Assembly (NCBI RefSeq): GCF_902459465.1
Contig: NC_047079.1
Coordinates: forward strand, 6,572,001-6,636,000
Source: Asterias rubens
Lineage: Eukaryota
Length of the DNA: 64,000 nt
Direction of reading: 5' to 3'
Under the pieces are notes generated by a model. That model had not been told where the DNA came from, ran no database searches, and saw nothing but the letters and a program-made list of their open reading frames with translations. Positions within the stretch are counted from its first letter, which is position 1, and the number at the start of each line of letters is the position of its first letter. The position numbers were made by a program, and so were the translations under genes. Positions 3,484 through 60,199 of this stretch are shown one piece after another.

Positions 3484-3520
3484 GTTAGACCATAGAGCAA
3501 GGAACAGGTTATGGTTAGAC
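3484..3520. mobile_element. Micro-insert CATAGAGCAAGGAACAGGTTATG between 7-bp duplications GTTAGAC
   Basis: GTTAGAC 3484-3490, 23-bp insert with CATA...TATG ends, GTTAGAC 3514-3520. Confidence 0.65.
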
Positions 3521-4253: not shown

Positions 4254-4622
4254 AGGCAGTGGACACTATTGGTAGCAATTGTCAAAGACTACATATCTCA
4301 ACATATGCATAAAATAACTAACATGTGGAAATTTGAGCTCAATCGGTCATCGAAGTTGCGAGATATTAATGAATGAGAAAAACAACTCTTGTCACACGAA
4401 GTTGCGTGCGTGTAGATGGTTGATTTCGAGACCTCAAGTTCTAAATATGAGGTCTCGAAATCAAGTTCGTGGAAAAATACTTCTTTCTGAAAAACTATGG
4501 CACTTCAGAGGGAGCCGTTTCTCACAATGTTTTATACCATCAGCCTCTCCCCATTACTCGTCACCAAGAAAGGTTTTATGCTAATAATTATTTTGAGTAA
4601 TTTACCAATAGTGCCCACTGCA
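4254..4622 (+). mobile_element. TTAA-flanked MITE (Kolobok/T2-like), family AGGCAGTGGACAC
   Basis: TTAA|AGGCAGTGGACACTATTGGT TIR; internal 17-bp hairpin TTGATTTCGAGACCTCA/TGAGGTCTCGAAATCAA; six near-full copies in the window. Confidence 0.88.
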
Positions 4623-6731: not shown

Positions 6732-6843
6732 GGCCGTGTCCGAAACGACGACTTCGGCTACAGCTACGGCTAGATCAGCGCGTCTGCCAGTATTGAAGAG
6801 TATTGAAGCCTCTGTAGCCGTAATCACCGTTTCGGACACGGCC
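6732..6843. mobile_element. Palindromic Harbinger/Tourist-like MITE, family GGCCGTGTCCGAA
   Basis: TIR GGCCGTGTCCGAAACG/CGTTTCGGACACGGCC; homologues at 12808, 15164, 30241. Confidence 0.75.
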
Positions 6844-6847
6844 TTAA

Positions 6848-7195
6848 AGACACTGGACACTATTGGTTATTGTCAAAGACCAATCTTATCATTTGGTGTA
6901 TCTCAACCTATGCATAAAATAACAAACCTTTGCAAGTTTGAGCTCAATTGGTCTTCGAAGTTGCGAGATAATAATGAAAGAAAAAACGCCCTTGTCACAC
7001 GAAGTTCGAGACGTCAAATTCTAAATCTCGAAATCAAATTCGTGGAAATGACTTCTTTCTCGAAAACTATACGTCACTTCAGAGGAGCCGTTTCTCACAA
7101 TGTTTTATACTACCAACCTCTCCCCATTACTCGTTACCAAGTAAGGTTTTATGCTAATAATTATTTTGAGTAATTACTAATAGTGTCCACTGCCT
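6848..7195 (+). mobile_element. TTAA-flanked MITE, family AGGCAGTGGACAC
   Basis: TTAA at 6844-6847 and 7196-7199, TIRs present, body homologous to 4254-4622 with a deletion in the internal hairpin. Confidence 0.88.
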
Positions 7196-9829: not shown

Positions 9830-11169
9830 CAACTGTAAAAAAAAAAAAACTGTTTCGAAAAGGGCCATAATACGGTGTCCATCTTGGCAGTTTGATTGAC
9901 TGTGTGTAGGCCCGTAGAGCCAGGACTACTCGTTTTTCCCGAAGATGCATTGTGGATTAGATGGCACTTTTGGGTAATAGGCATTGAGAATTGCAGATCA
10001 TCACAAAGGCTGGTGAAAAAGTGTGTGTGAAGTTTTACGAGTTGAAGGAAGGGATACAACTTAAGTTAATTTAATATTAAGGAATCGATGATCGTTAGCA
10101 TAGCATCGGAATGTCCCATACTGTTCACATACGTGTCGGAATGGTCGTCGTATCCCACTAAAAACAAAAACACAAAATTGATTACCTTAAACATTTTCCC
10201 AACAAAGACATATTTATGTCCATGAATAAAAATAAACTCCCCGTCGACTTTTTAGTAGAGTAAAGGGTCCAAATGTCAAGACGTATGACTACACGAGGGC
10301 ACTGCGGGTTCCCACCTCGTCACCCACGGTGCTAAATCACTAATACTATCAAAATAATTGGAGGGAGATTATTACATTTTATTTCATTTTTTTTAATTTT
10401 CTTCTCAAATCGCGATTTTTTTTTTAAAGACTTGCCCGGGACCTGTTTTCCAACCAGCGGTCTTAAATCATCACCGCCGATGGTTGGGTTGATTGGCCTC
10501 CTTGGTTTGGAAGCGCAGCGTCCCCGTGTAAAGGTTGCCTGTGTCTTTCGGTGGAGAGTTTCTTGACGAGCGCCACTGCGGGGTCCGACGATAAAAAAAA
10601 AATCACCAGGGAAGAGAAAAAAAACTTGCCTGGGACCGACCCCGGACAACTTTCCCACGATCTCTATAAACTCATGTGGCAGACTGCCAAAAACTGTACC
10701 CTGCACACTGACATGACCGAGCGTAGTCAGTTAGCGACACGTTTAGGCATGGCACGTGCTGGGCCTTGTTTGCTCGAGCGCGCCAAAACTTTTTTTACCC
10801 GTGTGCAGAAAGACAACAAGTGGAGATGAGATAAGAAGAAATATGTAACTTAGTTCTTGCATGGAGGAATGGAGGAAGGGTTAACATTTATATTAAACTG
10901 ATGTCACTGGTGGATGAAGTGTTTCACAATTATCCTAGAGACCGACATTTGTTTCAAAGGTGATGTACTGGATTGGTATAGCTGATAAAATAGTCGCAGC
11001 GATGCTTTTATTTGTGTGATCAACAAGCAACATCCATTGTTACAGTCGGGAGACAAAAAGCGAAACAATGCATAGCAACAGTATTCAGCATGTACAAATG
11101 TATAGGCCTAGGCCTAAACACATTGCTCTTAAATTAATGTCACATTTAATTTTAAATAGCCACCTTTAA

Positions 11170-11565
11170 AGAAACTGGACACTATTGGTAATTATCAAAG
11201 ACTAGTCTTCACAGTTGGTGTATCTCAACATATTTATACAAAATCAAACCTGTGCAAATTTGAGTTAAATCGGTCGTCGAAGTTGCGAGATATTAATGAC
11301 AGAAAAAACACCCTTGTCGCACCATGGTCGCACGAAGTTGTGTGATTTCAGATGCTTGATTTCGAGACCTCAAATTCTAAATCTAAGGTCTCGAAATCAA
11401 ACTCATGGACAATTAATTATCGAAAACTACGTCAGTTCATCTCCAGTTCAGAGGGAGCTGTTTCTCACAATGTTTTATACCATCAACCTCTCCCCATTAC
11501 TCGTAATCAAGAGAGGTTTTATGATAATAATGATTGTGAGTAATTACCAATAGTGTCTACTTCCT
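11170..11565 (+). mobile_element. TTAA-flanked MITE, family AGGCAGTGGACAC
   Basis: TTAA at 11166-11169 and 11566-11569, TIRs, homologous body. Confidence 0.87.
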
Positions 11566-13316: not shown

Positions 13317-13695
13317 ATGCAGTAGACACTATTGGTAATTACTCAAAATAATTATTGGCATACAACCTTTCTTGGTGACGAGTAATGGGGAGACATTGAT
13401 TGTATAAAACATTGCGATAAACGGCTCCCTCTGAAGTGCCATAGTTTTCGAGAAAGAAGTAATTTTCCACGAATTTGATTTCGAGACTTCAGATTTAGAA
13501 CTTGAGGTCTCGAAATCAACCATCTAAACGCACACAACTTCGTGTGACAAGGGTGTTTTCTTCTTTCATTATTATCTCGCAAGTTCGATGACCGATTGAG
13601 CTCAAATTTTCACAGGTTAGTTATTTTATGCATATGTTGAGATACACCAGTTGTGAAGGCTAGTCTTTGACAATTACCAATAGTGTCCACTGCCT
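13317..13695 (-). mobile_element. TTAA-flanked MITE, family AGGCAGTGGACAC (opposite orientation)
   Basis: TTAA at 13313-13316 and 13696-13699; reverse complement of the 4254 copy. Confidence 0.88.
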
Positions 13696-13699
13696 TTAA

Positions 13700-14062
13700 A
13701 GCCATTGGACCCTTTCGGTAAACAGTGTTGTCCAAGGCCCACACTTTGTGTACCACAACTTCTATATCAAATAACAAACCTGTGAAAATTTAGGTTCAAT
13801 CGGTCATCGGAGTCGGGAGAAAACAACGGAAAAACCCACCCTTGTTTCCGCGCGTTTCGCCGTGTCATGACATGTGTTTCAAATAAATCCGTAATTCTCG
13901 TTAACGAGAATTTATATTGTTTTGCTGTTTTCTCAAAAAGTAAAGCATTTCATGGAATAATATTTCAAAAGAAGTCTTTCACCATTGCCTTCTGTAAACC
14001 CTGTAAGTTATTTGTAAATCTGTGATTTTTTTTTTTTTCTGAACCGAAAGGGTCCAATGGCT
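13700..14062 (+). mobile_element. TTAA-flanked MITE (Kolobok/T2-like), family AGCCATTGGAC
   Basis: TIR AGCCATTGGACCCTTTCGGT...ACCGAAAGGGTCCAATGGCT; TTAA both sides, the left one shared with the neighbouring MITE. Confidence 0.88.
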
Positions 14063-18960: not shown

Positions 18961-21900
18961 ACATTGCTGCCCTGTGAAGAAAACAAGACTAAAACACAGG
19001 TGGTTCATTTCTCCAAGCCATTATTCCCCCACAACCCTGAAACACTTTTACCCAAAATCAATTCACTTTAATTGTAAACAGTAGACCCACAGTCCGATCG
19101 CTTTAATGGCCGTAGTTTATAATCGTAATGGGTTCGCCACTTCTCACGACTTGTATTCCCAGCGCCGAAATCTGAAGCGATCCGAAGTGATCGGTTTTCG
19201 AGTTCTCAGTAGCCTGATCTCGGAGATCCGATATGGTTGACATAATTAAATATCGCACGGTAACTTTATACCGAGTTGACGGTCGTTTGCGGTGAAACAG
19301 ATTATTCATTTTCAGGACCTCTTGCCAAAAAGAACTTTAGAGCATCTCATAAGGTGATTGCGTTACATGGTTTTCAAAGAAAGCCCTTGTGTCATATTAA
19401 GGTATTTCTTAAGGTAGTCGTTGGAAATGCCAACGAAAAGAACAGATGGTAATTCGCGAAAGTCAGAAGCGCAGGTTTTTTTGTTTACAAATTAAGCCTA
19501 CAAGACGCCAGCCGCACTTGAACTTGATGCTAATCGCCATCCAGTTTGATCATAATTTAAATTTGCTTGCAGACCTGGTTCGAAACCTGGCAGATTTAAC
19601 CAATGTCCCATGTATAGTTGGGCAGACAGAAGGAATATTTGTTAATAAAGTATTGTGCCTTTGGTAAGTGGAGTATGGAATTAGGCACCCAGTCTGACTT
19701 GGAGTATGTCATGAGACTGTGGGAGGAGAGTAATATTCTGGGGGGGACCCCACGCAGTCAGGATATGGACTGGAAACACCAGTGCTCGGTGTGATTCGAA
19801 GTCCTGGAAGTGGAAAGCGAGGAAAAACCTCTACACCAACCCGACCACCCGTTCCCCATGTCAGCGTCGTGCTGTGTGCTCTTTGGAGTGGTCGAAAGTC
19901 ACATGCAATATTCCTTAGGACTTAGTGCAACCATGGAGGAAGAAAATAGAGTGCAACCATGGAGGGTGCAACGGCGCAGAACTAATGAGAGAAGGCGTTG
20001 ATTTCTAAATGAATAGTTGATAGAAACAAACAATGAGATTCCCAAGGAGCTTTCATTCCATTCGTAATTTGACAATACGCTCAACAAAATGTTGCACCAT
20101 GCATTGATTGCACATGGTGTAAAGATGGTCATGGTGGGAATATCTTTATAAAGCTACCACCTTTTGATTGAAATTAATTCAACTACATTTATATAGGGTT
20201 AAAATAATCGGTTCCAACATTCCAAAGGTATAGCCATTAATTTTTTTTTTCTCACGGACGATATTTTCTCACGCTGCGGTCCGCGTTCTCACGTTTCAGA
20301 CGGTAGGATGCTGGGGCCGAAACCGCACACTTCAAGGTGTGAACACATAAGCCAATCAACCGTCACCTGTGTTGTTTTCTCGGCCCTCTCTTCTCCCCCC
20401 CCCCCCCCCCCCACTCCTTCTCTCTCACCGGTAATGGAAGCGTCGCGTCATCCCCGAGGATAAGAGTAAACAAACCCTGCTGACTTCTTGGTACTATCAT
20501 GGAGCAATGGTAGAGTTTAGTTTGCAATAGGTACATCTTCCCGTCACCTGTGATTTTTGTCATGGATTTCTCTTCAGTGACCAGTTCTTCATTTCTTGAG
20601 GTGTAGGAGTAAAGAGGGAGGGGGAAGATGATGTATGGAGTCAGAAAAAGTGAATGCTTTACCAAAAATAGAGCCTCATCCGAAAATACTGAAAATGTGT
20701 CAACTTTATATATGCTAATGAAAGACATGGACCTTCCAACCACCTTACTCATTGTGTGTGTGTGGGGGGGGGGGGCTTATCTCTGACAAAATTGAGGGCT
20801 GGGTACGTGGGGTAGAACTTCTTAAATAATTTAGGCAAACTGGTTTCTCATACAATTGTAAAAGCATACGTCTATGTAAGTCAGTATATCAAAGTTTGTA
20901 AACTACCGAGAGATTGGGCATTGTCATAGAGCTATAACTCTATGGGCATTGTTCAAACTTGTTCCACAAAATAATTCAAAGTAATTCCTAAAACAGTTTC
21001 AAACAACTTGTGGTTTCTGAATATATCCGTCACTCGCGATCTGATTTCCCGTGCATCACTCGTGAAAATTACAGTTCATAACTGATCAGTGGTCAAACGA
21101 GTAACAAAATAACGAGGTCAAATCATAGAGTGGCACCTTTTGAGGATTAGAGGGGGAGAGTGAGAGGCCGTGGGGACCCACTTTGGTGACCCTCGCGTAC
21201 GCAGTGTGCGCCCCGCAAGAAGCACGACCCACCCCGCAAGGAACCCGTGCCAGTACGCTCTACACACGTACACCAAGCCACAAGCCTGGGGGCAGGCAGA
21301 CAGAGAGAGGGCCACAAGAAAGGCTGTGCTATTTTACCTGTTTACAGCAGCGCAACAATTTGTTTTAATTGATACCAGGTTTCCAGACCCTCACTACCCC
21401 CGGAGTAAGATGTTCCCACGCCCTCAGACCAACCTCTCCCCGACCGCCAGGTCCCTGAAATGTTTTTCTTTGCGGTTTTTCTTCTTTCCCCGATTAAAAA
21501 ACCGACTCGGGTTTTCAGACAGTTCTCAGACATAACACGAAAGCTTTGATTCGATTTTATTATCAACGGTCGAGGAGCCATCAATCATTCAGAGACTGAC
21601 GTCAATTTTTCTCTCTCAAAATAAACTCTGGGTTAAAAAGAAAACTCTGCAAGAAGTTTTTTTTCTGACATATTGAGTGATGGTGTCGATTTGGGTTTGC
21701 TTTTATTCCATTTTGGTACTCGTAGAGTGATTCCAATACGCTTGGCATGAAATCTTCTCCCCTTTTTAACCTTGGACTTTTTAGTATGTCTAACGAGTAT
21801 AGTTAGGAAATATTGACAAAATAAAGGACTGTTGTACTCTCTAGAACAAACCCGATTTTGAAATCGATTTTCGCGTACGTGATTTCTCTTTCACGACGAA

Positions 21901-22569: not shown

Positions 22570-22739
22570 CGGGCCTTCATTAGGCAACGAAGGTGATTGC
22601 CTCAATGCTCTCTGGTCATTGCCTTGGTGCCCTTGAAATGCTCCGAGGAGAAATTTACAATTTCCTCATAGGGTGCCCTTTACCAATGAGGAAAATACCT
22701 TGGTGCCCTTGCCCTTTCAAAAACGGGCACACAGGCCCG
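22570..22739 (+). mobile_element. Dispersed non-autonomous element, hAT-like (GGAGGCAACGAAGGCGATTGCCTC...GCCTTGGTGCCCTTG family)
   Basis: Copies at 26758-26945, 37705-37826 (minus), 58746-58825, 58918-59030. This copy has CGGGCC/GGCCCG ends and AACTATAC/TACTATAC flanks (7 of 8 match). Confidence 0.6.
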
Positions 22740-23319
22740 TACTATACCCCATCCAATTGTGGCATAATTGTCACATACTTTAAAACGCTATTTTTTTCTG
22801 TACAAAGTTACAACTTATAACCCAAACCCCTAAATTCCTCCAAAGATTTCCTGAGATTCCCACAAACACAATAGACTTGTGTTCAAGTCGTTATTGTTCT
22901 GTCACGATCTTGCAACTGTTGTGCTGAGAGCAGCCCTCTCGCGACAGAGATTTAACGACTTGTCCACAAGTCTAAGAACGCAATGCAGACACAATAGTGG
23001 TACACCATGAAATATGAAATCATGTTGTGAATGCAGCTACACAGTGCACGGTCAACACGCCTCTGACCATTAAATATCATTCACTGTGTTATTGAATGTT
23101 TGATAATTAAAGTACAAGCCTGCAGTGATCATGACTTGTGGTGAGTGCATCTAAAGTCAATTTTCCCAATGGTTAAAAGTCAACTTTCCCAAAGTGTTGC
23201 CAACAGTAACATAAGTTATTTCGCAATTGTGTTAAATTACTTGTGAGCTTACTGAAGACGTACAGTTGTCTTCATTTAAAAGGTGAATTTTAGATCGAGA
23301 ACGAAACTATCCAATCAAG

Positions 23320-23609
23320 ATTCTTTATCCCCGATGCAAATTTAACATCTCTTATATCGTTGCGGTACCCGCTGTCAAAACATAGGATTCGAACTGCCTC
23401 TAGCTACACGGCAACCTCGGTAGTCTAGTTGGTAAGACACTGCTCTAGAATTGCCAGGGTCGTGGGTTCGAATCCCACCCGAGTAATATGCCTGTGATAC
23501 TTTGTTCACGGACTCGGGAAAGTACTGAGTAATACAGTGCTAACACACATCGGTGTATGGGTAAAAACCAAAATCAATATTCTTTATCCCCGATGCAAAC
23601 TTAACATCT
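23320..23609 (+). mobile_element. tRNA-derived SINE-like unit between two 31-bp direct repeats
   Basis: tRNA-like head 23415-23484 (A box TAGTCTAGTTGG, D stem GTCT/AGAC, T arm GTGGG-TTCGAAT-CCCAC); ATTCTTTATCCCCGATGCAAAYTTAACATCT at 23320-23350 and 23579-23609. Confidence 0.7.
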
Positions 23610-26080: not shown

Positions 26081-26104
26081 GTCAAACCATAGAGGAAGTC
26101 AAAC
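26081..26104. mobile_element. Micro-insert CATAGAGGAA between 7-bp duplications GTCAAAC
   Basis: GTCAAAC 26081-26087, insert 26088-26097, GTCAAAC 26098-26104. Confidence 0.55.
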
Positions 26105-26268: not shown

Positions 26269-26644
26269 AGGCAGTGCACACTATTTGTATCTACTCAAAA
26301 TAATTATTAGCATAAAACCTTACTTGGTAACGAGTAATGGGGAGCTGTTGATAGTATAAAACATTGTGAGAAACGGCTCCCTCTGAAGTAACGTAGTTTT
26401 TGAAAAGAAGTAATTTTCCACGAATTTGATTTCGAGACCTCAAAATTTGTATTTGAGGTCTCGAAATCAAGCATCTGAAATCACACAACTTCGTGTGATA
26501 AGGGTGTTTTTTCTCAGTATTATCTCGCAACTTCGACGACCAATTGAGCTAAAAAATTCACAGGTGTGTGTTTTATATGCATATGTTGAGATACACCAAG
26601 TGAGAAGACTGGTCTTTGAAACTAACCAATAGTGTCTAGTGTCT
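26269..26644 (-). mobile_element. TTAA-flanked MITE, family AGGCAGTGGACAC
   Basis: Left TTAA 26265-26268, degenerate right TCAA, homologous body with intact internal hairpin. Confidence 0.85.
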
Positions 26645-27355
26645 TCAAAGGGATGTTTTATAAATTATGTATAGGTGTATCACCCAAATCAGAAGTTGGT
26701 TAAAACATTGTATCAAAACCAAAGAGAAACTTCGGCTTGATTCATGGGAGAAGACTACAGTCTGCCAAGCTTGATACTTCACGGAGGCAACGAAGGCGAC
26801 TGCATCTATGCCCCTGGCTGGACATTGCCTTGGTGCCCTTGAAATGCTCAAGTAGACACTTACAATGTCCTCAAGTGGTGCCCTTCAAGGAGAAAATACC
26901 TACGGTGCCCTTGCCCTTTCAAAAACGAAGCATATACAAGGTCTGAGGCTCAATTGTTGTATACAACACCAGGAATGTCTGACACCTCTCAATCTTGGCG
27001 TCTACGCTCATTGCCAAGCCCAACCTCCCCACAAAACAACAACATAAAGCACATTTTAAAGACGCTAAATAAAGCTTTTTAAACTGGAGACAATTCTAAA
27101 TACAATTCCAGATGTCGACCTTTACCATGAAAACAAGACTGGGAGAATAAAAAGACGAATGACCTCAGCTGGTTGGAGAAGTCAAGTTGGCATAATAACC
27201 AAATCTCTTAACACCCCCCCCCTACACCCCGCCCATCAAAAAGCTCTTCCATTATGAAAAGCACCCATCGCGTCGGTCTGACACATGAAACGTCGTGGGT
27301 TTGTGTGACGTTATTGCACTTTCTCGCCCACGGAACCAACAACACCAGTCCTTTG

Positions 27356-27392
27356 GTTGTCCCATAGAGTAAGGACAGAGATATGGTTGTCC
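27356..27392. mobile_element. Micro-insert CATAGAGTAAGGACAGAGATATG between 7-bp duplications GTTGTCC
   Basis: GTTGTCC 27356-27362, 23-bp insert similar to the one at 3491, GTTGTCC 27386-27392. Confidence 0.65.
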
Positions 27393-29640: not shown

Positions 29641-29674
29641 GTCAAAGCATGGAGGAGGAAAATAATGGTCAAAG
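29641..29674. mobile_element. Micro-insert CATGGAGGAGGAAAATAATG between 7-bp duplications GTCAAAG
   Basis: GTCAAAG 29641-29647, insert 29648-29667, GTCAAAG 29668-29674. Confidence 0.62.
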
Positions 29675-33796: not shown

Positions 33797-33837
33797 CTAT
33801 CACCATGGAGGAATAATTTATTCCTCCATGCTATCAC
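33797..33837. mobile_element. 27-bp perfect hairpin CATGGAGGAATAA-T-TTATTCCTCCATG between 7-bp duplications CTATCAC
   Basis: 13-bp perfect inverted arms 33804-33830; CTATCAC at 33797-33803 and 33831-33837. Confidence 0.75.
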
Positions 33838-37107: not shown

Positions 37108-37474
37108 AGGCACTGGACACTATTGTTAATTACTCAAAATAAATGTTGGCATAAAAACTTACTTGGTAACGAGCAATGGAGAGCTGTTGATAGTAAAACA
37201 TATTGAGAGAAGCGGCTCCCTCTGAAGTAATGTTGTTTTTGAAAGAAGTAATTTCTCACTCAAATAATGAAAGACTTCAGCTGAAGTCTTTTTATTATGG
37301 ATCTGAAAGCACACGAAGTTGAGCAAAGTTTTATATTTTTCGTTCATTATTATCTCGCAACTTCGACAACCATATGAGCCAAAATTTTCACAGGTTTTTT
37401 ATTTTATGCATTATGTTGGAATACACCAGGTGAGGAGACTGGTCTTTGACAATTACCAAAGGTGTCCAGTGCCT
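37108..37474 (-). mobile_element. TTAA-flanked MITE, related subfamily AGGCACTGGACAC, 650 bp downstream of the Hes stop
   Basis: TTAA at 37104-37107 and 37475-37478; TIR AGGCACTGGACAC/GTGTCCAGTGCCT. Confidence 0.87.
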
Positions 37475-38125
37475 TTAAGGGCAGACAAAACTTCTCAGAT
37501 AAAAGAAATAAATTAAGTAAATTAAATCACGACAAACTAACTCACCTTTTTCCAAATCAGATTAATCAATAAATTGCAAATCAAATCAGTAGAAAAAATA
37601 TATAAATATTTTTCTTCATGTTACAAAATGTACAAACTCTATTATAGAAAAAATAGCTACTTTGGAATGGAAGACAAAATAACAATCTTTGAATTAAGTA
37701 ATCCTTAGTAAAGGGCACCCTAAAGGAAATTGTAAATTTCTACTTGAGCATTTCAAGGGCACCAAGGTAAAGACAAGGGTGCGTGGAGGCATTCGCTTTC
37801 GTTGCCTCCCTGAAGTAACAGACCTGATATTTGGTGATTAAACTACATTTTTACTGAGAAATAAGACTCGTGAAGTGAAATAGAGATCAAACTTTAAAAT
37901 GACGGTGTTTAGACATAAATTTTCTTTGAGAAAACATTTTGGGGCATTATCCAGTTAATGACTTGTCTATTTTAATATTCAGCCTAAGTTGCATACTGTC
38001 TTACTCTTTTTTTTATGTTTTAAAAATATATTAAATTCACAAAAAACACATTTCGAAAATATTTGAAATTAAATATGAAAATAAGAACACTTCAAAATGT
38101 TTAACACATCACAACAAATCATTGT

Positions 38126-57730: not shown

Positions 57731-58620
57731 CTCACGATTTTCTTTTCTCTTTTTTTTGCATCTTTAGTAAATAGCATCTTAAGACGAACATTTGAATGAG
57801 AAGGGGGTAAATCCAAGACGCCTCCCGAACCTCCTATGTTGGGCCAACAGAGTCGCCTGAGTAGGCAAACTGGAGATAGTCTCTGCCCCAAATCAAGAAA
57901 ATCTTGATAAGGCCAAATAACAAAAATACAAGTTGGTACCCTCTCGCAGCCTTTTTTGAGGCCCACCTTTTTTTATATTTTTTTTTTTCAAAATGAATTT
58001 TGTTGGTGTTTTTCTCTTTAAACTTACTAATCTTTTAAGTACTTGTAGTGACTTTAAACTGAAAAAATGACGGCCAGTTCGAATTTAAATGCTTAGCGGA
58101 CACCCTTAAAGGAAATAAAAACAAGTCCGTCATCCTCCTCTTAAAAAAAACCCCCAGACGAACAACTGGTATTTTGTTTTACATGGCCTAGGACACCAGA
58201 TGTGGTTCTCTGCGATTTCTTTTCCTTCAAGAATTAAGATGAGATGTTGATATCAAAGCTGCAGGTTTCTTAAGGTGGGCTTACCTCTAAGATCTCTTTG
58301 TTTGATTCTTACTACCGGGATATGCGGAACAATTGAGAATAAATTTAGATCTCTTGAGCGGATTTAATCCTGTTCCAATATCGGGGATAAATTGGAGAAT
58401 TGTTTTGGTGGATGAATCGGTTTTTAAAGAAGGAGGATTTAAGGAGGAGTTTGTCCAGTCCCTTAAGGCGTAATAATCGTTCTTATTCGTATAATCATTT
58501 AAAGGTATCAGAGCTAAGACTCAATGCATCCAGACAGTAATGGGGATAGGGCAGAGATGTTGTCAGCAAAAGAACAGATGGAACGCAATATTGACAAAGT
58601 GAGGTATTTAAGGAGACAAT

Positions 58621-58985
58621 AATGCTCAGACTCTTAGCTCAGGCTAAATCTGCTCGAAAAAGTCACTCATACCATGGAGGAAGATGGAGGCTTCCTCCAT
58701 GCTCATACCAACACATGGCAAACAAACAAAGATCAAAGACATCATGCAGGCATGATACTTCACGGAGGCAACGAAGGCGATTGCCTCCATGCACCATAGC
58801 CATTGCCTTGATGCCTTTACCAAGACGGTAATGCTAACACTCTTAGCTCAGGCTAAGTCTGCTCGAAAAAACACTCATACCAACACATAGCAAACAAACT
58901 AAGATCAAAGACATCATGCTGGCATGATACTTCACTTGCCTCCATGCCCCATAGTCAATGCCTTGATGCCCTTTACCAAGGAGCA
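58621..58985. repeat. Local diverged duplication (58621-58829 vs 58830-58985)
   Basis: AATGCT.A.ACTCTTAGCTCAGGCTAA.TCTGCTCGAAAAA...AAGATCAAAGACATCATGC.GGCATGATACTTCAC present twice. Confidence 0.85.
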
Positions 58986-60199
58986 AATTCCTTGGTTCCA
59001 TTGCCCTTTCAAGTCGAAGTATACGGTACAAGAATAGCAAGACGGTGAAGAGAATGGAAATTACACTAGGAGGGCTTCATCAAACAATGGAGGAACACTG
59101 CCTGATGAGGAGGTTAATCTGGGTTCAGTTTGGCTGAATGTTAAAAACAACAAGACCGAATTCTGGCTTGCTCCACCGTCCATTGGCGTTTTCCAAACCT
59201 CGGCTTAAAGGCTCCAGCTCCGCGTTTGATTTTGGAAACACTGTACAAAATGTGTACTGCTTTCCAACATAGACGAGTCACGGAGCCCAGAGCTGGAAAC
59301 GGAGCCAAAGCCCTGGTTTGGAAAGGGCCCCCAATCGTCACTAAACACCACACATTTCCTTCAGGGAATAATTTCGTCCTTGCAAAATTAAAATCCACCT
59401 TTACGAATAAGCTACGAACCACCTCTTTCTTTCTGTTAAAAAAAAGAGGAGTGCATTTATCCAACCTCAGACATGGTTTACTTCTAATCACTTCGGTATT
59501 GTACTTGTTCAGGTATTTTTGGCAGTACATTTGGCAGAAGATCATGCCTAAGTAACCATAGTTTAATCGAAAAATTCTGTAGCTTTTTCTTCTCCTTGAT
59601 TGTGTTTTAGGGTTCTTTTCAAGTCATGATCTCCCGGTCTCCAAGGAAGGAGGGGTCAAGACACATCTCATGCGTCACCAATTGCCCCCTAAAGAAGGAT
59701 AATCCTGAATTCAGCTCAGTTTAATCTCGGGCTCTTTTACGGTTATTTTGGCAAAATTAAAAGCAAAATTAAGTAAATGTCGCCCCACCGATGGGGTATC
59801 GCCTTTTATTGATTTCTGGCTTTATACGAACTAACTTCATCGGATACTCGCTACCATCAGATACTCGCTACCATCTCTATAAGAAGTAGGTTTTTTTTTT
59901 GTTTTTTTTTTTGGGGGGGGAGGAATTACCCTACCTTTAAACAAAATACTTTCGTTGGCAATCTCCTATTTTCCAACTTGGCTAGTGATAACTGAATTGC
60001 CCAAGATTATTACTGTTATCTATCTCCTGGGTACATTTTGTGTACCGGCAATGTCCTGTTTATTATCTCATCTTGAATATTGGTGTTAGTTTTTAACTTT
60101 TGATACCGCCATTTTGTTTATAGTACTTGCCGCTGTACTCTACTCCATAATCCTGACCCATTGCGGATCAAGAATCTGTGTCAAAATGCCATGTCACCA

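Follow-up and report, generated by a model that had tools for sequence, protein, structure and literature searches.

P-type elements and their excision footprints

The Drosophila P transposase makes a 17-nt staggered cut inside the inverted repeat, a property described as setting it apart from other characterised cut-and-paste transposases (PMC7776569, PMC10983969), and the footprints left when P is excised and the donor break is sealed by end joining consist of remnants of both inverted-repeat termini between the target-site duplications (PMC7776569, PMC10983969, PMC2577343). A palindromic target motif is also documented for the P element (PMC2577343). Target-site duplications within the P superfamily range from 7 to 9 bp (PMC3698922), with 8 bp in P itself and 7 bp in the superfamily members 1360 and Galileo (PMC3698922). 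Both 1360/Hoppel and Galileo belong to the P-type cut-and-paste elements and have numerous non-autonomous derivatives (PMC3698922), and no report of their footprint spectrum was found in the literature. A deuterostome member of the group is the zebrafish element Pdre2/THAP9, whose inverted repeats are short and start with CATAC and which also exists as internally deleted copies (PMC10983969). Its target-site duplication measures 8 bp, its excision in assays often produced larger deletions, and genome-wide scars have not been described for it.

The locus described here lies in a 64,000-nucleotide stretch of the starfish Asterias rubens genome (hereafter, the window) and, like the footprints of Drosophila P, holds remnants of both inverted-repeat termini between target duplications. 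The starfish scars further resemble those of P in having a retention ceiling near the known stagger, CATG termini, a possible templated filler and a palindromic target motif, and they have the 7-bp duplication in common with 1360/Hoppel and Galileo, although the latter occur in insects and have inverted repeats that differ from the starfish termini and are often much longer. They differ from P in the length of the duplication (7 bp versus 8 bp), in the retention ceiling (18-20 nt versus 17 nt) and in their starfish host; in addition, no autonomous copy is linked to them, and scars outnumber intact ends. Literature searches did not find scars of this kind described in echinoderms.

Filled and empty copies of a duplicated unit

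Pairwise alignment and BLAST (E = 3e-30 and 3e-11) identify the segments 58621-58829 and 58830-58985 as paralogous, forming two tandem copies of a unit of ~173 bp that are ~93% identical, with 10-11 substitutions in ~150 aligned columns (~7%) once two large indels are removed. The original prediction, that a filled and an empty version of the same site stand side by side at this locus, is borne out with exact coordinates, as a single CTCATAC is present in the matching context of copy 2 (Table 1). Copy 1 has a surplus of 36 bases at the site (i.e., 29 bp plus one heptamer), and because the segments are paralogous and copy 2 holds a single heptamer, these extra bases are arranged as expected for an insertion that duplicated 7 bp of its target. 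Intact elements elsewhere in the genome with the same termini and 7-bp duplications are independent support for this reading, as is the palindromic target motif that the heptamers have in common. The accompanying claim that the 29-bp hairpin is a real insertion stands with regard to this geometry and needs amending with regard to the hairpin itself, which is the remnant of a departed element and not a self-moving 29-bp unit. An 8-bp duplication had also been considered formally possible; it does not hold as a rule, since of 22 two-sided scars in which the 7-bp repeat is exact only 7 continue with C, and at the CTCATAC site the following base extends the match by coincidence. Further empty sites from a repeat family were sought and given up, as the first ~90 bp of the unit, in which the heptamer site lies, have no other match in the genome, so that copy 1 versus copy 2 is the sole paralogous comparison. 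The scar site is non-coding, with no reading frame or Pfam-worthy ORF nearby.

Table 1. Coordinates of the duplicated unit and its scar, related scars, complete elements and P-type transposase reading frames. Positions are those of the window, except where a locus label (L) precedes them.
Feature	Location	Strand	Basis or remarks
Copy 1 of duplication	58621..58829	.	209 bp; ~173 bp without the 36-bp insertion; alignment, BLAST
Left 7-bp target-site duplication CTCATAC	58666..58672	.	Sequence; fits motif at positions 2, 6, 7
Left scar arm, first 11 nt of transposon terminus, CATGGAGGAAG	58673..58683	+	Identity with intact elements
Filler ATGGAGG, 7 nt, copy of terminus positions 2-8	58684..58690	+	Sequence; chance ~6e-4
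Right scar arm, last 11 nt of element, reverse complement of left arm	58691..58701	-	Sequence
Right 7-bp target-site duplication CTCATAC	58702..58708	.	Sequence
Part of very high-copy dispersed repeat within duplicated unit	58747..58815	.	Recurs at ~58917-59012 in copy 2
17 bp in copy 1, absent from copy 2 between 58935 and 58936	58764..58780	.	Left arm and loop of dispersed-repeat hairpin
Copy 2 of duplication	58830..58985	.	156 bp; ~173 bp before 17-bp deletion; alignment, BLAST
Empty paralogous site in copy 2, single CTCATAC	58874..58880	.	Sequence, alignment
Complex sister scar: GTGCAAC three times, 19 nt of terminus kept, second flank and CATGGAGG copy	19925..19972	.	Window scan
Sister scar, mostly one-sided, between two GTCAAAG	29641..29674	.	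Window scan
Sister scar, CTATCAC, 27-bp palindrome, CTATCAC	33797..33837	.	Window scan
Complete element, ~950 bp, non-coding	L027 1501-2444		Exact 7-bp duplication
Complete element, ~950 bp, non-coding	L048 863-1816		Exact 7-bp duplication
Complete element, ~950 bp, non-coding	L049 920-1880		Same termini; flanking heptamers differ
Complete element, 4161 bp, non-coding	L046 781-4941		Exact 7-bp duplication
Derivative, 265 bp, non-coding	L065 7689-7953		Exact 7-bp duplication
P-type transposase reading frame	L060 4738-7184		Full domain set, split across two overlapping frames
P-type transposase reading frame	L062 3790-5559 (-)
P-type transposase reading frame	L063 3991-5811 (-)
P-type transposase reading frame	L064 4580-6466 (-)		Starts with weak zf-AD match in place of THAP

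The scar is quite probably the trace of a cut-and-paste transposon, likely P-type, that was inserted into copy 1 only and later excised, copy 2 never having been hit. The history would begin with the local tandem duplication of the ~173-bp non-coding unit, followed by entry of a transposon with CATGGAGGAAG termini into copy 1 at CTCATAC, which would have duplicated the 7 bp. Excision would then have left 11 nt of each terminus on the donor flanks, and end joining, with 7 nt of the terminus copied as filler, would have produced a unique 29-bp palindrome between the heptamers, while copy 2 would have remained untouched throughout and kept its empty site. What we infer for the scar at 58666-58708, from its structure and from comparison with related sites, is the sequence in which these events took place, the route of repair and the P-type nature of the enzyme. 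Taken alone, this single scar is inert and non-coding and carries little weight; its value is that of a clean internal control, since the paralogous empty site indicates that the heptamer was duplicated by insertion and thereby gives a foundation for interpreting hundreds of comparable palindromes as excision scars.

Composition of the scar and elements with matching termini

The scar at 58666-58708 consists of CTCATAC, a 29-bp palindrome (58673-58701) and a second CTCATAC. Folded as a single strand, the 29-mer forms an 11-bp stem with a 7-nt loop (-10.3 kcal/mol), and it occurs once in the 417.6-Mb genome when up to 2 mismatches are allowed. The left arm is identical to the first 11 nt of three intact elements (L027, L048 and L049). 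Between the arms lie seven additional nucleotides, ATGGAGG, which the original prediction had tentatively read as templated filler from end-joining repair. The idea is plausible: the heptamer reproduces terminus positions 2-8, the calculated probability that a random 7-mer equals any of the ten arm 7-mers is ~6e-4, and a related scar (19925-19972) carries an unambiguous templated copy of flank and terminus. No simple microhomology path could be derived for the filler at 58684-58690, so templated synthesis during end joining is a plausible origin for it.

The five complete elements recovered have terminal inverted repeats of 25-29 nt beginning CATGGAGG, and four of the five are flanked by an exact 7-bp duplication. 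Related terminus types have an inner GAAGGAGT block in common, and intact-type ends number ~111 in the genome. The ~950-bp copies are mutually 94-96% identical, which indicates that the element family is not young. A supposed solo terminus on another contig turned out to be the 265-bp derivative. The 4161-bp element contains no transposase remnant; its one reading frame of 206 aa has no Pfam match and showed no resemblance to the P-type frames in tblastn. Nested within this element is an unrelated dispersed repeat of ~300 bp (L046 2172-2473, element positions 1392-1693), of which six copies at 68-79% identity are present in the window (26350-26664, 13395-13702, 4345-4541, 11166-11484, 6841-7112 and 37189-37480).

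Excision geometry, target motif and candidate transposases

At the sampled sites, scars are made of 8-20 nt of the element termini. Among 30 sampled termini retaining at least 18 nt, 12 end at 18, 10 at 19 and 6 at 20, with none at 21-25 and 4 intact ends. The same ceiling is apparent in the size distribution of the palindromes, 398 of which measure 20-50 bp compared with 10 of 51-80 bp (~40 times rarer), several of the latter being two adjacent scars. A ceiling of 18-20 nt per terminus is what a long staggered cut predicts to be retained on the donor flanks: a P-type transposase would cut one strand at the end of the element and the other deep in the inverted repeat, which would leave a long single-stranded piece of terminus on each flank. 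Read indirectly from the scars in this manner, the starfish cut would lie 1-3 nt beyond the 17 nt of P. The heptamers at 22 sites follow a palindromic motif, (G/A)TNNNA(C/G), with T at position 2 in 16/22 (p = 3e-4) and A at position 6 in 16/22 (p = 5e-5), and CTCATAC agrees with it at positions 2, 6 and 7. A palindromic target motif would be produced by a symmetric transposase dimer. The exact 7-bp duplication falls within the 7-9 bp of the P superfamily, and the inverted repeats are of the CATG/CATA type found in that group together with such a motif. The element that donated the CATGGAGGAAG termini is thus most likely a member of the P superfamily.

Other well-known transposons leave different traces. 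The hAT, Mutator and Transib transposons make duplications of 8 bp, 9-11 bp or 5 bp and form hairpins on the flanks, and their footprints consist of a few flank-derived bases and hold no element termini; excision of Tc1/mariner leaves 2-3 nt and that of piggyBac none. The starfish scars, with their 7-bp duplication and their 8-20 nt of element termini, do not have the form of a hAT, Mutator or Transib footprint.

About 20 places in the genome match the P-type RNase H domain, and several long reading frames have the full architecture of HTH, RNase H-N, GTP-binding insertion and RNase H-C (Table 1). Three P-type matches lie within 120 kb on contig 8 (17.05-17.16 Mb). No recognisable inverted termini were found near the frames at L060, L062, L063 and L064, no termini matching those of the elements were present in the 10-kb stretches around four transposase loci, and no transposase hit was found near any of the intact-type ends listed. 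The only sequence that the transposase stretches and the complete elements have in common is the unrelated nested repeat. Across the complete elements and the surroundings of four P-type transposases, no autonomous element with CATGGAGG termini was found, and because no P-type frame could be tied to these termini, membership in the P superfamily rests on the geometry of the scars.

These findings leave some room for the view that the scars are genuine excision footprints of a non-P or undescribed superfamily that also leaves long terminal remnants, a view to which both the missing link between a transposase and the CATGGAGG termini and a ceiling of 18-20 nt instead of exactly 17 lend some support. 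It is nevertheless considered unlikely, since the 7-bp duplication, the CATG/CATA termini similar to those of P and Pdre2, the ceiling on long remnants and the palindromic motif are all in keeping with P, the genome contains several P-type transposase reading frames, and the footprints of hAT, Mutator, Transib, Tc1/mariner and piggyBac are unlike the scars.

Related scars in the window and the genome

Sites of this kind are far more numerous than chance would produce. With up to 1 mismatch, CATGGAGGAAG occurs 12 times in the window, where 0.85 occurrences are expected. The window was also scanned for short inserts, beginning CAT(A/G)GAG or ending CTC(C/T)ATG, that lie between two exact copies of a 7-bp direct repeat; 10 such sites were found, whereas the reversed sequence has none and 50 shuffled versions average 0.08. 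Among the 10 sites are a two-sided, a mostly one-sided and a complex example (Table 1). In the complex scar at 19925-19972, the second flank and CATGGAGG copy are clearly a templated product, and the whole looks like the outcome of template switching during repair. A second type of scar, with CATAGAG termini and exact 7-bp flanking repeats, is found at 484-509, 3484-3520, 20917-20952, 26081-26104 and 27356-27392. The CATAGAG and CATGGAG types together amount to 10 scars in 64 kb; if this density is typical, there would be tens of thousands of scars genome-wide, and otherwise it would represent local clustering.

Genome-wide, mini-palindromes of the form CATGGAGGAA-N(0-30)-TTCCTCCATG number 398 in 417.6 Mb, compared with 0 in a backwards control. 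A sample of 15 loci reduced to 11 distinct sites (five loci being copies of one repeated segment), and an exact 7-bp flanking repeat was present at 9 of the 11, with a 6/7 match at one more. Both the arm length and the centre of the mini-palindromes vary from site to site, and one-sided scars without a second terminus also bear the 7-bp repeat.

These observations bear on whether the 29-bp palindrome might be an ultra-small mobile element (a mini-MITE) that transposes as such. Its inverted termini and target duplication are formally the hallmarks of a MITE; however, a MITE is expected in many near-identical copies at different sites, and the 29-mer is single-copy, with no second occurrence in the 417.6-Mb genome even when 2 mismatches are tolerated. 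Arm length and centre that differ among sites, mini-palindromes that obey the length ceiling, and one-sided versions that carry the 7-bp repeat all likewise argue against a unit moving intact, and this origin is regarded as extremely unlikely. For genome annotation, excision followed by repair carries a warning: such short palindromes are repair products, and not regulatory hairpins or mini-elements.

In flies, most gaps left by P excision are repaired from the sister chromatid. A broader and more tentative proposal for the starfish, which we consider possible though doubtful, is that the scars form a genome-wide record of a deuterostome P-superfamily transposase with a staggered cut of ~18-20 nt and a 7-bp duplication, and that end-joining repair, instead of copying from the sister chromatid, may have followed repeated excision and left short palindromes in numbers from thousands to tens of thousands, clustered locally by short-range hopping. 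Considered together, the scars make it possible to read, in an echinoderm and without biochemistry, how a P-type transposase cuts, which targets it prefers and how the breaks are repaired. At L006-L010 (contig 1, 2.61-2.63 Mb), a 34-bp scar with identical flanks occurs at least 5 times at spacings of ~2.7, 6.6 and 11.8 kb, indicating that later segmental or tandem amplification carried the scar along.

Age of the scar and changes in copy 2

The evidence on age and polymorphism comes from assembled contigs, in which rare alleles would be missed. One contig from run X19 is identical to the window over 58200-58776 (0 differences), and a contig from a marine metagenome (X3) covers 58422-58775 with 2 differences, neither of them inside the scar. 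A relative (organism C, X10) is represented by a contig covering 58471-58782 with 7 differences (~2.2%), in which both the scar and the filler are present, with one substitution at the last base of the left heptamer and one in the filler; a second contig of this relative has a 6-bp deletion in the centre of the palindrome. No assembled contig lacking the insert was seen. The presence of the same scar in a relative diverged by ~2.2% indicates that the scar predates that split, and the ~7% difference between copies 1 and 2 indicates that the duplication is also older than the split. A scar formed before the split on an older duplication fits the order of duplication, insertion, excision and speciation, and the scar at 58666-58708 appears to be old, fixed and inert.

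The other large indel that separates the two copies involves the 17 bp at 58764-58780. This stretch was considered as a second hairpin insertion in copy 1, an interpretation refuted by the finding that the hairpin is a conserved part of a repeat with several hundred copies. The hairpin consists of GGAGGCAA, a 9-nt loop with CpG-decay variants, and TTGCCTCC; the arm pattern has 713 strand matches in the genome compared with 0 in a control, and the same loop is found at several hundred places. Since a hairpin with this loop is widespread in the dispersed repeat, the 17 bp were deleted from copy 2. Direct repeats do not bound this deletion.

The loss of 17 bp demonstrates that copy 2 can lose hairpin sequence, and parsimony alone is consequently insufficient to argue against a precise loss of the scar there. 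Such a loss would mean that the scar is older than the duplication and that copy 2 later lost the palindrome and one heptamer through slippage or recombination between the heptamers. Palindromes that lie between direct repeats are known to undergo precise deletion, a part of a different hairpin is gone from copy 2, and the contigs of the X10 relative have a gap over 58829-58902, i.e., the early part of copy 2. Even so, this history demands an additional base-exact event, while the scar in copy 1 has kept both heptamers since before the split from the relative and both heptamers are kept in hundreds of similar scars; moreover, the 17-bp deletion, not lying between direct repeats, is no example of the proposed mechanism. 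A scar that preceded the duplication is accordingly judged distinctly unlikely, and insertion into copy 1 after the duplication is retained as the preferred order.

The dispersed repeat that contains the 17 bp has at least 40 genomic matches and aligns with partial copies at 22610-22770 and 26810-26990 of the window and at L004 690-870. Contig depth reaches the thousands over 58746-58815 and 58936-59012 in four runs, including relatives, and the edges of the repeat fall at 58746-58753. The sequence TTGCCTCCATG, considered as an older scar common to both copies, was rejected as such because it is part of the same dispersed repeat. Elsewhere in the window, ARAGORN reports a tRNA-like gene at 23414-23486 with an undetermined four-base anticodon, which is probably a tRNA-derived repeat or a pseudogene.
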